Assembly: GCA_051530055.1 (NCBI GenBank)
Contig: CM121342.1
Span: forward strand, 9,935,480-9,999,479
DNA: 64,000 bases
Direction of reading: 5' to 3'
Source: Neoechinorhynchus agilis
Taxonomy: Eukaryota; Animalia; Acanthocephala
Translations under genes and position numbers: made by a program
In this document: positions 6,104 to 60,740 of the stretch, one piece after another
Position numbering within the stretch: the stretch's first letter is position 1
How the letters are laid out: each line of letters begins with the position of its first letter
The notes under the pieces: model-generated
What the model was told of the DNA's origin: nothing
Database searches by the model: none
What the model saw: the letters and a program-made list of their open reading frames with translations, nothing else

Positions 6104-9100
6104 ATGGAGTTTGAACTCATAAGAACTATTCAACAAAGAGTAAATCGCAATTTCAACACTAACTACTGCTATAATGAAGTACTTACAATACTGAGCGAAT
6201 GTTTAACGGAATTCAATACTTTAAGTATTCTTTGGACATTCGCTGAACGTACATATGTTCAAAATCCAATCAAATCGAACGCAACATTTAGTGATTTTTA
6301 TTCAAAGGCCATTGAAAGCATCAAAGAAATCGCAATGTGTTCATCTGAGACTGCTGCTCTTCATTTGTTATCAAAGTCCTTAGATGTCAGTGTTGCGATA
6401 AATTCAATCTTGGACAATGAGAAATGCGTTACATTGTTCGATGGAATCGATGTGATCGAATTAAAAAACAACGTTCAACATTCACTAATGAATGAATTTA
6501 TTGGCTTCAGTCCGACTGGATTAACAAACGATAGTATGAGTACAAGTCCAGACGATACGAGTTCGAGCGCTGTGAAATGGAACGTTATCAAATGCTGCTT
6601 CGATGAAACTGATTGGATGATCCCTTATGATGAATACGAATGCTGTCTAAATACGAGGCTCCACACTTATGATTCCGAGGATGAATTCACGTTATTTCCA
6701 CGCTTGTCTATCCATGAGTGGCTAGCCGATGTATCCGGGCTGCTTCAAACACTAGCAGCCACGACCATTTTGAACGAATGTAAAAGATTAGAGAGTCTGA
6801 AAAAAATGAACAGCATCCTTCGTGATTTCATGGCAATCAATCCGAAAGCGATTACACCCGATTGCCATATATATCTGTTCAGATCGATCGCCAGTTTTAT
6901 ACGGGTTACCTCCGTACTTGTCGCATCCATCGAGGAATTTATGGAATCTTTAATAGATCCTTTAATGGAAACTGTTACTACGGTTTTCAATTCAAAAGCA
7001 CCACTATATGAACTGCTCGATTATAGACCAAACTATGACTTTTACGCAGAAGGAAATCTTGAAACCATTACTTCATTACCGATCAAGAAAATGGATTATT
7101 TCAAGGAAGGCATTCTAATAACTATCTTTGTCGAATCAGAAGACTTGACCTACTTTTACAGTGAAGTCTTAAATGCGGTAGGTATTTTTTAGTTACCTTG
7201 ATTTGGATGGGAAATTCTTTTGGTAAAATGTAATTTTTAAGCGAGTCATCCTCAAATACTTGAACCAGGACATAATCAGAAGATGCCGGGATTATTTGGG
7301 AATGACACGCTGATTTTTCTAAAAATTAATAACCTTCCAGACGAAAAAAGCATTTGAAACTTTTAACGTCTTAAGATGTGCTTCGTTTTCTTCAAATAAT
7401 TTTTTTTCCTCTAATAAAATCACCTTTAAAAAATTACAATGCAAGTTTATTTACTTGCAAGAGATTTTTTTATTGATCTTAAACTTTACCCAGAAACATT
7501 TCCAACGGTTGCTCATTCAACAGGACCAATAAAAAACTTGTTCATTCGCATCCTGTGCAAAATACGCGGACAACATCATAATGAGTACTGCGTTCCAAAA
7601 TATCAAACAATATTCATCGTCTTCGCCTCGATTTGTCATTTCGTATTACTGTCGTGGTCGTTGGAATGATTTTCGCCGAATTATTCACCCGTTAATTGAT
7701 CGCGTGCTAGTTCCGTCGTTTCTCAAATCTAACATTTGATCATCGTTTTTCTCTTTTCTGGTTGCTTTAAAGCATCCAAGCTGATAATTTTTCATCAACA
7801 ATGATTTCCTCGTAGATTTGCGCCATCGCGTGCTCAAATCATGTCAGGCGTTCTTATTCTTGAAACCGCTAGAAAAATTATTCTTACTTGCTTTGTCTGC
7901 TCCATCTAATTTTTTATCCCCTGAGTAATAAAATGTTCGTCCTCGCCAAAACGAATTTTTTTCCTGCCACGTAAACATTTGCATGGCGAATGAAGGTCAC
8001 GACCCATTTTTTGCTATTTATACTTCTTTAAATCTGTAAAATCCTCCTCCTTCAACATCTTTTTGGGCTGAGAACTAAAATAAAAACACAATAAAAAACT
8101 TGGGCATTTTTTGCTGACTGTTCATGTTGTTAGGTGCTGCCGAATTGTTTCTTGAGTTTTTATTGGACAGTTTTTAAGCGTATATTGATAATGCTGTGTG
8201 TCATTTTTCTTTTTATCAGTTGCTTATATTAAAATTAGTTTGTTTTTAAAAATTAATTTTTGTTTCATCACAAACTTCATTTAGTTTTCGGAAACTTTTG
8301 GTATCAACAGTCTGCCCGATTTCGTAGTTTCGCTTATTGGACAGAACGAAAATTTCGCCTGTAAGCTGTTGAACATTATTTTAAAAGAAATATTGCCATT
8401 CGTACAACATGATACTTTTGTCGCCCACTTGGAAGCCACAATTATGATGCTTTCTCAGGACGTTGGAATGTTCATTGAAAAGAGCAAGGCCGGAATTTCC
8501 GTCCTTGAAACAATGCTGGAAATATCAAATTTGCTAAATAGTCGAAATATTTCCGAACAGATAGCCGACACAATTGGTTTGGTATTCGTCAATTTATTAA
8601 GTAATGAAGATAAATCAGAAACAATTGAGCTGATCCACAATAGTCTTATTCGTGGTTCACTTTCACGAGAGCTAAAAACACTCCGACTGATTTTGGTATC
8701 ATCGAATATCGAATCAATTCTGAATTCTGAGCTGAATGTGGATAAAAATATAGTTAGTAAATTGAAGTATCTGCTTCAATTCATTGATAAAACTGCATCA
8801 ATGGAGGTAATACATTTTAATTTATTGCCTTGTTATAATTTAGCAAACAACAGGAATACTCTGGTCAAATGGAAAATGCTCCCTATTCAACGGATGCTGA
8901 TTTACCTTTATGTGACTCATCGACATTCTTGGAAAAACTGGAATATTATTTTAGAATGTTTAAGAAAAAACTTGCCAATGAACCATTCAAAAATCTGAAG
9001 GAATTATATTGCACAAAACGAGAAATGATTTTGTTTATACAACGTACACTGAAGGAAAACAAATCGGAATATGTAGAAGCAATCAATGAAACTCTTAGTC

Positions 9101-58182: not shown

Positions 58183-60740
58183 TTAAGGACGATTTAGCGA
58201 TTTTTGCTCAACAAAACGTACCTCATTTTTGATGCTTTTAATATCATTCAATTTCATTTGAATTTTTAATTTAGAAACCCTGTGCTTTTCACAGACCGGG
58301 TCTTTATACTTTATAGAGTCGATATCCACATCTGTTGGTTTAAAGTTTTTAACCTTTGCAACTTCGATTTCCTTCATCTTAGGCAATTCAAGTAGACCAT
58401 AACCTTGCGCTAGAAGACCTATATCCAATTCTTTAGTTCTAAGAATCAATGAGCATTCATGTGAACAATAAGCTTGCATAAAAGACACAAAAGCAGCTCG
58501 ACCGCTGTCGTGGAATTCGCGTTCTTGACAAGCGAGTTTAACAATTTGATCAGTATAATCATGAACGTTTTCCAACGGACTAATTTCCTCCATTGGTATT
58601 CGCTGACTTTTTTGAGCGAACACGACAAAAGCTAACTCGTTCGGCATTAAGAGACTCAAAGCTCTACCTTTTCGACCCATTCGAGCCGTTCGACCACACC
58701 TGTGGATAAATGCGTTCAATCGAGTTGGTAAATCAAACTGAATAACCCAATCCACATCGGGCATATCGATTCCACGCGACATCAGATCCGTACAAGTCAA
58801 AATTGAATCTGATTTTGAGTCCATGAAACGTTTGAATACATTCGCTCGTCGTTTCCGGACCTTTTTGTGCAAAACAAAGACCTCCTTGTCTGTCTGAAGT
58901 CGTTGTAAAAGTGAAGAAAAATAATTTGTACAGTGACAGGTATTGAAAAACACAATGCATTTGCCCTTAACGAGATTCTGTATGACTGCCATCACGGTCT
59001 AAGATCGTATTTTTTTCCTTCATGGATAGAAAACTTCACAGTAATGAAATGATCGATATTTAAAATGGCATGAATTACGGTTTTATCGGGATTGATACGC
59101 TCAATATGACAATGAGTGCTGAAAATTGATTTAATGAGGGCGAGAATGAAATAATTGATTGGAAAACAGAAATAATTGCAGGCACGGCAAGGGCCCAATT
59201 ATTCTACACTGCAGTTTTACTTGCCAAGAGAGCTTTTAAAAATACAGTGTATGCATTGGGAATTTTAATTCGTCATTAAAAGACGAAATTCTATAGAAAA
59301 GATACTTCCTTTTTGTTAATTATACCACCTCCAAGATTTAAATACAACGATGATTTATTTCCGATATTTCACATCGGGCAATTCCGTCATTTCCCCAACG
59401 TTTGACACTCAAGAAAAACTTACAAACAATGAAAAACCTGGCGAAAATGTCGGAATTTTTCGGCGTGAAATATCTGAAATAAATCAGTGAATTTTTGAAT
59501 CCATATGACGGGTGGTCGAACTATTAAGAGAAAATTCTATACATTCAATCATAAACATAACCGAAATTCTTCAACAACCAGCAATTTGAATTATCAGCCG
59601 GCATACATTCGACTTTAACGATCTTTGTCGGGTTCCAGGAAAAATATACTAAAGCTTGATTTTAAATTCAATCTTTATAAAAGTGTAATACGAAATAAAA
59701 TAATTTCTTTGTGGAATACTTTTTATTTCTTGCTCTACAGCATCAATCGAAAACAAGCTACCCAAAACAAAACAGGAATTAGCGAATACGATATTAAACG
59801 TTAGTTGATTAAATTTCTGATCATAATCGACGACCATATAATTACTTTCAAGACTGTCAGGAACTCGAGTGTTCTTCAAGTTTTTGGTTGGAATATTTTG
59901 TTTAACAGTAATGCAAGCCGGGTTTCTCATTCCTGCTTTTCTTAGTCTCTCAAGATTAGATGTTTGTGTAGCTGAATAAAAACACGTTCTTCTTTGCCGT
60001 GGAAGGCAATCAAGAATAAAATTTATACTTTTGGTCGAATGAATAGATTGTTTAGTGCTTTAGGTAAACATACCTATTTTCAAATCCGAGATCCAACAGT
60101 CGATCGGCTTCATCAAGAATTAAATACTCGATAGATTTCAGCGCCTTACACACGTGAAAATCTTGATCATCTCGTTTGATTAAGTCCTCAAGTCTACCAG
60201 GCGTAGCGACCAGTATATGAAAACTATTTAAAACATAGTTACATTAATTTGGACAAGAAAAATTTTGTATCTCAATCACCTGCTCTTGTTTAATCTGGCC
60301 ATATCATCTTCGATTTTAGTTCCACCGATAAAAATTCCAACATGAACATTCGTCATATTTAGTGCCTTCAGAAGGCATTCCAAATTGTTCTTTACTTGAA
60401 TGGCAAGTTCACGAGTTGGTAGAATAATCAGTTCAAATATTGTATTCTTTTTTAGGTCAAGGTTCAATTGGGTTCGAAACCAAGTGATAAGGGGAATCGC
60501 ATAAGCAAGTGTTTTCCCGCTACCAGTCACAGCCTCAACTGCCAAATCCTTCTTATCTTTTAGAATTAAAGGGAGGCAAACAGCCTTTGAAGCGAGAATA
60601 TTTTGTACTTTTCCGAAACCTATAAAATCACTAACTTGAACTGGTGTCATCTTTTCGAAACCTAAAGATTGTAGAGCGTCGATCATTTCTGTATCTTTGG
60701 CAATTACTGATCGCGTCCATTCGTCCGGATACTCTGGCAT
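58183..60740 (-). CDS. DDX55: DEAD-box RNA helicase DDX55/Spb4
   Basis: [58 protein letters not shown], and the Spb4-type C-terminal extension. Confidence 0.92.
58994..59802 (-). other. 809-bp DDX55 insert with non-GT-AG ends and imperfect terminal inverted repeat
   Basis: Starts AACGTTTAATATCGTATT; the other end reverse-complemented is ACGGTCTAAGATCGTATT (14/18 match). Removal gives [21 protein letters not shown] in frame. Confidence 0.7.

Follow-up and report, generated by a model that had tools for sequence, protein, structure and literature searches.

We analysed 64,000 nt of DNA from Neoechinorhynchus agilis (Acanthocephala; assembly GCA_051530055.1, CM121342.1), hereafter the window, whose position 1 is record position 9,935,480. 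In several of its genes conserved coding sequence is interrupted by long inserts. An original prediction from this DNA had counted five of them, in USP24, SDR39U1, PKD2 (two) and DDX55, and had proposed that the animal removes each one precisely, at boundaries without GT-AG ends. The core of this proposal holds for three of the five: in DDX55, in SDR39U1 and at the second site in PKD2, as judged from the coding sequence, a homologue-like protein requires removal of the insert at non-GT-AG boundaries. The USP24 insert turned out to be wrong, and the first PKD2 insert stays undecided.

Three inserts in conserved coding exons

The three inserts lie as follows, in window positions.

58994-59802, minus strand: DDX55 insert, 809 nt; excision joins ...KFNQL to MAVIQNL...
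42722-43430, plus strand: second PKD2 insert, 709 nt, written AG..AG; excision joins ...GSEAFD(N/S) to IVSSIMS...
29537-32619, plus strand: SDR39U1 insert, 3083 nt; excision joins ...SSRVQT to LKKINSAIKS...

Flanking reading frames are intact and homologue-like right up to the junctions, and short GT-AG introns adjoin the inserts in the same genes. In the window as a whole, ordinary GT-AG ends are found at 13 short introns (42-68 nt) and at two of greater length (308 and 1107 nt); the donors of the short ones are weakly conserved beyond GT. These introns include the following controls.

52531-53675, minus strand: HisRS, five GT-AG introns of 42-68 nt, zero indel relative to human HARS
60585-60635 (51 nt), 60224-60279 (56 nt) and 60028-60073 (46 nt), minus strand: short GT-AG introns of DDX55
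29204-29248 (45 nt), 29356-29404 (49 nt) and 32837-32881 (45 nt), plus strand: short GT-AG introns of SDR39U1
USP catalytic domain, plus strand: two short GT-AG introns (48 and 52 nt) and one of 308 nt

For DDX55, junctions were scored with a hidden Markov model of 120 homologues, taking all in-frame junctions up to 36 nt either side of each boundary. At the three short introns of this gene the GT-AG junction was either the best or at most 1.3 bits below the best among 777-1460 arbitrary junctions. At the long insert, removal of 809 nt (58994-59802 and its equivalent slides) gave 622.3 bits. The best GT-AG pair, 59789-58978, which costs one amino acid, reached 613.9 bits, that is, 8.4 bits less, and the more obvious GT-AG pair, 59789-58999, which adds six (TFNITV), reached 611.1 bits and ranked 303rd of 913. 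Boundaries written TA..CG, AA..GT, AC..TG and CG..GA tie, with GT..AT 1.4 bits lower. The 809-nt removal leaves zero indel relative to 60 aligned homologues, none of which carries an indel at that helix. Ribosome biogenesis requires DDX55/Spb4. A protein search in a collection that includes the N. agilis gene models returned no uninterrupted DDX55 copy, the best match being 47% identical, so that the check for an intact paralogue came out in favour of the original prediction.

At the second PKD2 site, structure alignment with PKD2L1 and PKD2 places exactly one residue between ...GSEAFD and IVSSIMS.... Scored with Pfam PKD_channel, the 709-nt removal 42722-43430 gave 144.5 bits; GT-AG 42713-43415 gave 133.1, and both GT-AG 42713-43430 and a GG-AG option, 42723-43410, gave 130.1. 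The non-canonical junction thus stands 11.4-14.4 bits above the canonical options. An equivalent description has the insert bounded in register by ATA/TA at 42719 and 43428.

In SDR39U1, 3.1 kb lie between the Rossmann exons that encode the N-terminal part (29190-29536) and the exon for the C-terminal part, from ~32620. With TIGR01777 the 3083-nt removal gave 252.3 bits when SRVQT is joined to LKK and 250.7 when SRVQ is joined to FLKK, a 3074-nt removal gave 247.3, and the sole GT-AG option, 29528-32628, gave 240.8, which is 11.5 bits below the 3083-nt removal. The latter is bounded in register by TA at 29538 and 32621. Ten full-length SDR39U1 junction variants, the canonical one included, had no exact match in collections that hold no N. 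agilis transcript assemblies; the single-exon genes for glycogenin and NDUFB2 matched solely on the genome record, which is how this composition of the collections was recognized.

In all three genes, the best canonical pair (GT-AG or GC-AG) scored 8.4-11.5 bits below the non-canonical removal, and the inserts of 809, 709 and 3083 nt described in the original prediction were in this respect borne out.

Other candidate sites

Three further sites were considered, of which the one in RAD17 is an addition to the original set.

41434-42167, plus strand: first PKD2 insert; 734- or 740-nt non-canonical removal and GT-AG 41421-42199 score alike
62981-63649, plus strand: RAD17 candidate insert, 669 nt, with a 3-nt AAT microhomology; joins ...KKIITFSN to PASKGKRKK...
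7178-8284, plus strand: canonical intron of the USP-domain gene, 1107 nt, GT-AG (GTAGGT..ATTTAG), phase 0/0, restores the frame

At the first PKD2 insert, six variants (734-nt, 740-nt, AT-AC, xx-AG, GT-AG 41421-42199 and GT-AG 41535-42199) fell within 143.7-145.1 bits. The 740-nt non-canonical removal proposed earlier does fit, but GT-AG 41421-42199 scores equally. There is a strong acceptor (tccttcctgtag/A) at 42199; the frame 5′ of this acceptor still encodes the conserved Cys of S2, a helix that would lose ~14 residues in the GT-AG product. Three-frame translation of the insert yielded no hidden micro-exon.

In RAD17, removal of 669 nt leaves zero indel by residue count relative to human RAD17. 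No GT-AG pair was found for this insert, only GC-AG options, and with TIGR00602 the 669-nt removal reached 69.0 bits against 65.5 for the best GC-AG, 3.5 bits apart. This is suggestive of a further member of the insert class, albeit a weaker case. The frame of RAD17 slips by 1 nt at a TTTT run (62952-62955), where an extra T gives ...MKHRFLTFLKKIITFSN, as in human RAD17; the earlier statement that the open reading frames carry no frameshifts is therefore not fully true. The slip is probably a homopolymer error in the hybrid assembly, which includes Oxford Nanopore (ONT) reads, or else a real frameshift.

The gene earlier named USP24 gave a different outcome. If 903 nt are taken out from 7302, the frame meets a stop 14 codons on, and 903-nt removals starting at 7243-7329 are all closed. 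The GT-AG intron 7178-8284 connects the exons on either side, and the deposited model KAL7672017.1 uses it. Like the 20-residue 'exon' that it skips, the N-terminal 618 amino acids (6104-9000 region) had no homologue among 1.8 billion representative proteins except their own model, and no PDB relative, so that there is no homologue spacing to restore. Only the UCH domain (~13930-15224) is recognizable in this gene, and its orthology to USP24 is putative.

Incidentally, the deposited BRAKER annotation presents the USP-domain gene in at least four models, with one break at the canonical 52-nt GT-AG intron 15202-15253, and the first DDX55 model ends within the canonical 46-nt intron 60028-60073; the inserts are not the only cause of broken gene models in this assembly. 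A ~400-nt intron of ArgRS (~26250-26659, minus strand) lies in a variable linker, where every canonical solution brings an indel, GC-AG adding 2 residues and GT-AG adding 8. A foldback repeat within this intron recurs at 25234-25440, 54938-55046 and 61466-61552. This intron may be another member of the insert class and was not counted.

Insert ends, repeats and surroundings

The five inserts (DDX55, RAD17, SDR39U1 and the two of PKD2) are of similar size, namely 669, 709, 734 and 809 nt, and ~700 nt for SDR39U1 once its satellite expansion is subtracted. Three of them carry imperfect terminal inverted repeats, or a short perfect one near the ends.

59785-59799 (5′ arm) and 58997-59011 (3′ arm), minus strand: DDX55 terminal inverted repeat, 15 nt, 13/15 paired, starting 3 nt inside each end
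42723-42736 (5′ arm) and 43411-43424 (3′ arm), plus strand: imperfect inverted repeat of the second PKD2 insert, ~11/14 positions pairing
29549-29558, plus strand: perfect 10-nt inverted repeat of SDR39U1, ATCCTCATTT, pairing with AAATGAGGAT at 32603-32612, 12 nt from the insert's 5′ end and 7 nt from its 3′ end
29731-32576 (2846 nt), plus strand: tandem array nested in the SDR39U1 insert, a 461-nt unit repeated 6.2 times at 96% identity

Inverted repeats of 8-18 bp had been described at or near the termini of every insert. Stems are found in three of the five inserts considered here, and these are only marginally above chance: the best ungapped stems gave P ~0.027 in 3/5 inserts, and the terminal duplex energies of the five gave P = 0.19, 0.036, 0.13, 0.46 and 0.78. 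Stems start at +4/-4 in DDX55, +2/-7 in the second PKD2 insert and +13/-8 in SDR39U1, and are missing from RAD17 and the first PKD2 insert. Terminal base-pairing is weakly supported and would be at most a weak aid to removal. Because pairing barely exceeds chance and the distance from stem to junction varies, the idea that removal is structure-guided does not stand well. The direct repeats of 0-6 bp described earlier shrink to in-register microhomology of 1-3 nt at the insert ends, no more than AT-rich DNA would show by chance.

No single terminal rule accommodated the set. Of the four best cases, DDX55, RAD17, SDR39U1 and the second PKD2 insert, the last two have in-register TA or ATA bounds, and TA-bounded excision as a uniform rule fails for DDX55, RAD17 and the first PKD2 insert. 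A uniform 3′-AT rule is conceivable for the five sites but fails at the best-scoring SDR39U1 length, and if every 3′ end were AG while the 5′ end was free, RAD17 and the first PKD2 insert would not fit. AG..AT is one way of writing the RAD17 insert, as AG..AG is for the second PKD2 insert; in DDX55 and SDR39U1, no removal of the right length starts with AG. CT..AC ends, as expected of an antisense canonical intron, are absent. So is the 5′ site that U12-type introns require, /ATATCCTT or /GTATCCTT; in-frame AT-AC pairs have 5′ ends such as ATAAAATGG and ATTCTCCAAT, none with TATCCTT.

With regard to repeats, the nesting noted earlier is real in SDR39U1, whose insert would measure ~700 nt without the extra array copies. 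The first PKD2 insert holds a palindromic repeat (41617-41795) that is kin to the satellites at 29731-32576 and 55449-57046. One repeat family is thus seen in three forms: a 161-nt satellite present ten times (55449-57046), the 461-nt SDR39U1 array and the single palindromic unit in the first PKD2 insert. Such a distribution points to a mobile element from which satellites are seeded. No related copy of the DDX55, second PKD2 or RAD17 inserts was found within the 64-kb window.

The window belongs to a 16.4-Mb chromosome, and exact look-ups showed that the proteins it encodes match the record exactly. The 46.2-Mb genome assembly is a MaSuRCA hybrid that combines ONT R9.4 with Illumina reads, taken from ~50 pooled whole worms, males and females, and was annotated by BRAKER2 with RNA-seq evidence (PMC12690905). 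Introns and splicing are not treated in PMC12690905 or PMC12256650, and literature searches found no mention of non-canonical introns in Acanthocephala and no paper that cites the assembly accession. The window has a GC content of ~35% and contains long exons, numerous very short introns, retrotransposons and satellites. Neither an Rfam nor a tRNA scan gave any match in it. Its genes and main element are as follows.

~6104-17480, plus strand: USP-domain gene
~25638-27980, minus strand: ArgRS
~29190-33309, plus strand: SDR39U1
minus strand: glycogenin, single-exon
plus strand: NDUFB2, single-exon
~40519-44166, plus strand: PKD2-like channel
~47026-51387, plus strand: Gypsy element
~52206-53754, minus strand: HisRS
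~58186-60740, minus strand: DDX55
from ~62315, plus strand: RAD17

The Ty3/gypsy retrotransposon (47026-51387) is apparently intact, with terminal repeats of ~100 nt (47026-47126 and 51278-51387) and an unbroken 1372-aa gag-pol open reading frame that contains protease, reverse transcriptase, RNase H and integrase domains. Fragments of long interspersed nuclear elements lie at 125-1600, 45311-46750 and 19702-22565; the first two are mutually inverted copies at 95% identity, and the third has an endonuclease/exonuclease/phosphatase domain and lies in a GC-rich stretch with strong GC skew. Intergenic or upstream tandem arrays were noted at 28418-28910 (period 111 nt), 38212-38826 (223), 24383-25155 (~387) and 62093-62316 (108), in a genome that is compact.

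Possible routes of removal and known systems

How might such genes yield functional proteins? The explanation that we favour, tentatively and with slightly less than even confidence, is that old transposon insertions are removed at the RNA level by non-canonical splicing. It was ranked first on the analogy with Fritillaria borealis, and because the inserts look old and tolerated. DNA-transposon-like insertions of ~0.7 kb each, resembling miniature inverted-repeat transposable elements (MITEs), would long ago have entered coding exons of N. agilis housekeeping genes, and would be tolerated because they are removed from pre-mRNA as introns at non-GT-AG boundaries. The spliceosome, or a relaxed version of it, would carry out this removal, presumably with precision. 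Features that liken the inserts to transposons are their similar sizes, the imperfect terminal inverted repeats of three, the in-register TA or ATA bounds of two, and the repeat family common to the first PKD2 insert and that of SDR39U1, copies of which make up satellites in other parts of the window. In addition, the BRAKER annotation, which allows canonical introns only, presents PKD2 as three models, DDX55 as two and SDR39U1 without its N-terminal half, with breaks exactly at the inserts.

Several observations weigh against non-canonical splicing. The inserts share no common terminal motif or dinucleotide rule that a spliceosome could read. In DDX55, every nearby 809-nt removal scored 619-622 bits, so the gain mostly reflects the absence of an indel rather than residue matches, and fast-evolving lineages do show small indels where exons join. 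Since short-intron donors are weakly conserved, the canonical fallback sites are not rejectable by strength. BRAKER also splits genes at canonical short introns (USP 15202-15253 and DDX55 60028-60073), which makes the model splits weak evidence. Lastly, two of the five sites originally proposed fail or stay undecided.

A first rival is that these are ordinary spliceosomal introns that use the GT-AG or GC-AG fallbacks, the proteins then carrying lineage-specific indels (+6 or -1, -3 or +2, about -6 residues). We regard this as unlikely, albeit as the most serious of the competitors. The original prediction had acknowledged a canonical fallback at each site, and in-frame canonical pairs do exist everywhere except at the added RAD17 site, where the options are GC-AG only. 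With 5′ splice sites weakly conserved beyond GT and a DDX55 penalty that is mostly gap cost, such pairs are not far-fetched in a fast-evolving parasite with heavy gene loss (PMC12690905); moreover, canonical splicing explains the USP case and can explain the first PKD2 insert. However, its products score 8-14 bits lower at three sites, whereas the control introns differ by at most 1.3 bits, and 0/60 aligned homologues share an indel at the DDX55 helix. The frame also runs on in homologue-like fashion past the only usable GT, as seen with VQT against LET in SDR39U1 and with the conserved F of xxF-S/D-T in PKD2. It would be odd, besides, if indels marked the junctions of the long introns with repeats but spared all 13 short introns.

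The inserts might also never be removed, if the genes were broken or decaying, or if the inserts were polymorphic transposon insertions or assembly artefacts, with function provided by other alleles. The MaSuRCA hybrid was built with low-coverage R9.4 ONT reads of a pool, RAD17 does show a 1-nt homopolymer frameshift, and N. agilis lacks ~45% of metazoan BUSCO genes (PMC12690905). Yet the flanking exons are open and conserved to the junctions, the short introns are intact, and the inserts look old, with decayed inverted repeats and nested array copies at 96% identity. Three to five harmful exonic insertions in 64 kb would not all reach consensus frequency. An essential gene such as DDX55/Spb4 would be among the casualties, and the protein search, which covered the genome's own gene models, gave no intact second DDX55. 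We therefore consider this explanation improbable.

Removal at the DNA level, whereby germline or embryonic sequences would be cut precisely in transcribing somatic nuclei, as ciliate internal eliminated sequences (IESs) are, and an assembly of whole worms rich in gametes and embryos would display the unexcised form, is the least probable of all: no animal is known to excise elements precisely from its coding exons, the TA bounds fail for DDX55, RAD17 and the first PKD2 insert, the ends do not fit the Paramecium consensus TAYAGYNR, and 2-3 nt of microhomology is expected by chance in DNA of 35% GC. Its attraction lies in boundaries without a splice-site rule and in the two inserts with in-register TA, as for Tc1/mariner-type insertions and TA-bounded IESs. 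The source DNA did come from pooled whole males and females, but the reported k-mer completeness of the assembly hints at no second genome version (PMC12690905).

Returning to the preferred reading, a broader form of it is that N. agilis, or acanthocephalans at large, possess a second class of intervening sequence: ~0.7-kb transposon-derived inserts in coding exons, without fixed terminal dinucleotides, precisely removed by a relaxed spliceosome or by a non-spliceosomal route. We judge this claim to be evenly poised between true and false. Such a class may coexist with the ordinary GT-AG introns of 45-70 nt. If true, non-canonical introns would be widespread in a second lineage of animals besides Fritillaria, and for the first time in a protostome; this parasite's relaxation of the GT-AG rule would have come about independently. 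It would also offer a second animal system for studying how the spliceosome handles exonic transposon insertions and how new introns arise. Part of the fragmentation of the N. agilis gene models and of the low genome BUSCO score could find its cause here. Gene finders restricted to canonical introns split or truncate insert-bearing genes, and acanthocephalan gene counts, BUSCO 'gene loss' and expression analyses may be biased in consequence.

Four known systems can be set beside the inserts. The IESs of Paramecium are mostly shorter than 150 nt, TA-bounded, with TAYAGYNR ends and a Tc1/mariner-like origin, and are cut precisely from DNA by a domesticated transposase. They resemble our cases in interrupting coding sequence and in the in-register TA of two inserts among the four best cases. 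The N. agilis inserts are longer (~0.7-3 kb) and do not carry TAYAGYNR, and removal from DNA, established in Paramecium, would be conjectural here.

Introners, known from Micromonas, dinoflagellates and others, occur as families with many copies, which bring along GT-AG sites or create them with their target-site duplication (PMC11282704). The likeness lies in transposon insertions into exons that are tolerated by removal as introns. In contrast, the N. agilis inserts have no GT-AG solution, and those of DDX55, PKD2 (second) and RAD17 have no related copy in the window. A test for introner or MITE features within the 64 kb found only the first PKD2 insert and SDR39U1 to share a repeat; inverted repeats were imperfect, and duplications were of 1-3 nt or decayed.

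In euglenid nonconventional introns, positions +4 to +6 pair with -8 to -6, usually as CAG/CTG (PMC11282704, PMC12501133). Variable non-canonical borders, lengths of tens to thousands of nt, junction repeats resembling target-site duplications, near-end pairing and the coexistence of conventional introns are all points of resemblance. Pairing is at fixed positions in euglenids, however, whereas the N. agilis stems sit at variable offsets and barely exceed chance, and euglenids are protists rather than animals.

In how removal would work, the closest analogue is Fritillaria borealis, whose U2 spliceosome takes out MITE-derived introns without GT-AG ends (Henriet et al. 2019; PMC13326754, PMC11282704). 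It has duplicated divergent U2AF subunits. There, 95% of introns are non-canonical, with AG/AC and AG/AT termini dominating (PMC13326754, PMC11282704), and a YAY triplet both immediately precedes the 5′ site and closes the intron at its 3′ end (PMC13326754). Both are animals in which coding-sequence inserts lack GT-AG ends, show features like inverted repeats and target duplications, and coexist with conventional GT-AG introns. The differences are that ~20% of the introns in the N. agilis window would be non-canonical, all of them long, against 95% in Fritillaria, and that the AG/AY termini and YAY triplets are absent; a rule of YAY followed by AG..AY does not describe our set, no YAY triplets being present at the inserts. 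N. agilis belongs to Acanthocephala, within Spiralia, and removal at the RNA level, demonstrated in Fritillaria, is what we infer for N. agilis. We provisionally place the inserts beside those of Fritillaria as transposon-derived non-canonical introns in a new phylum.

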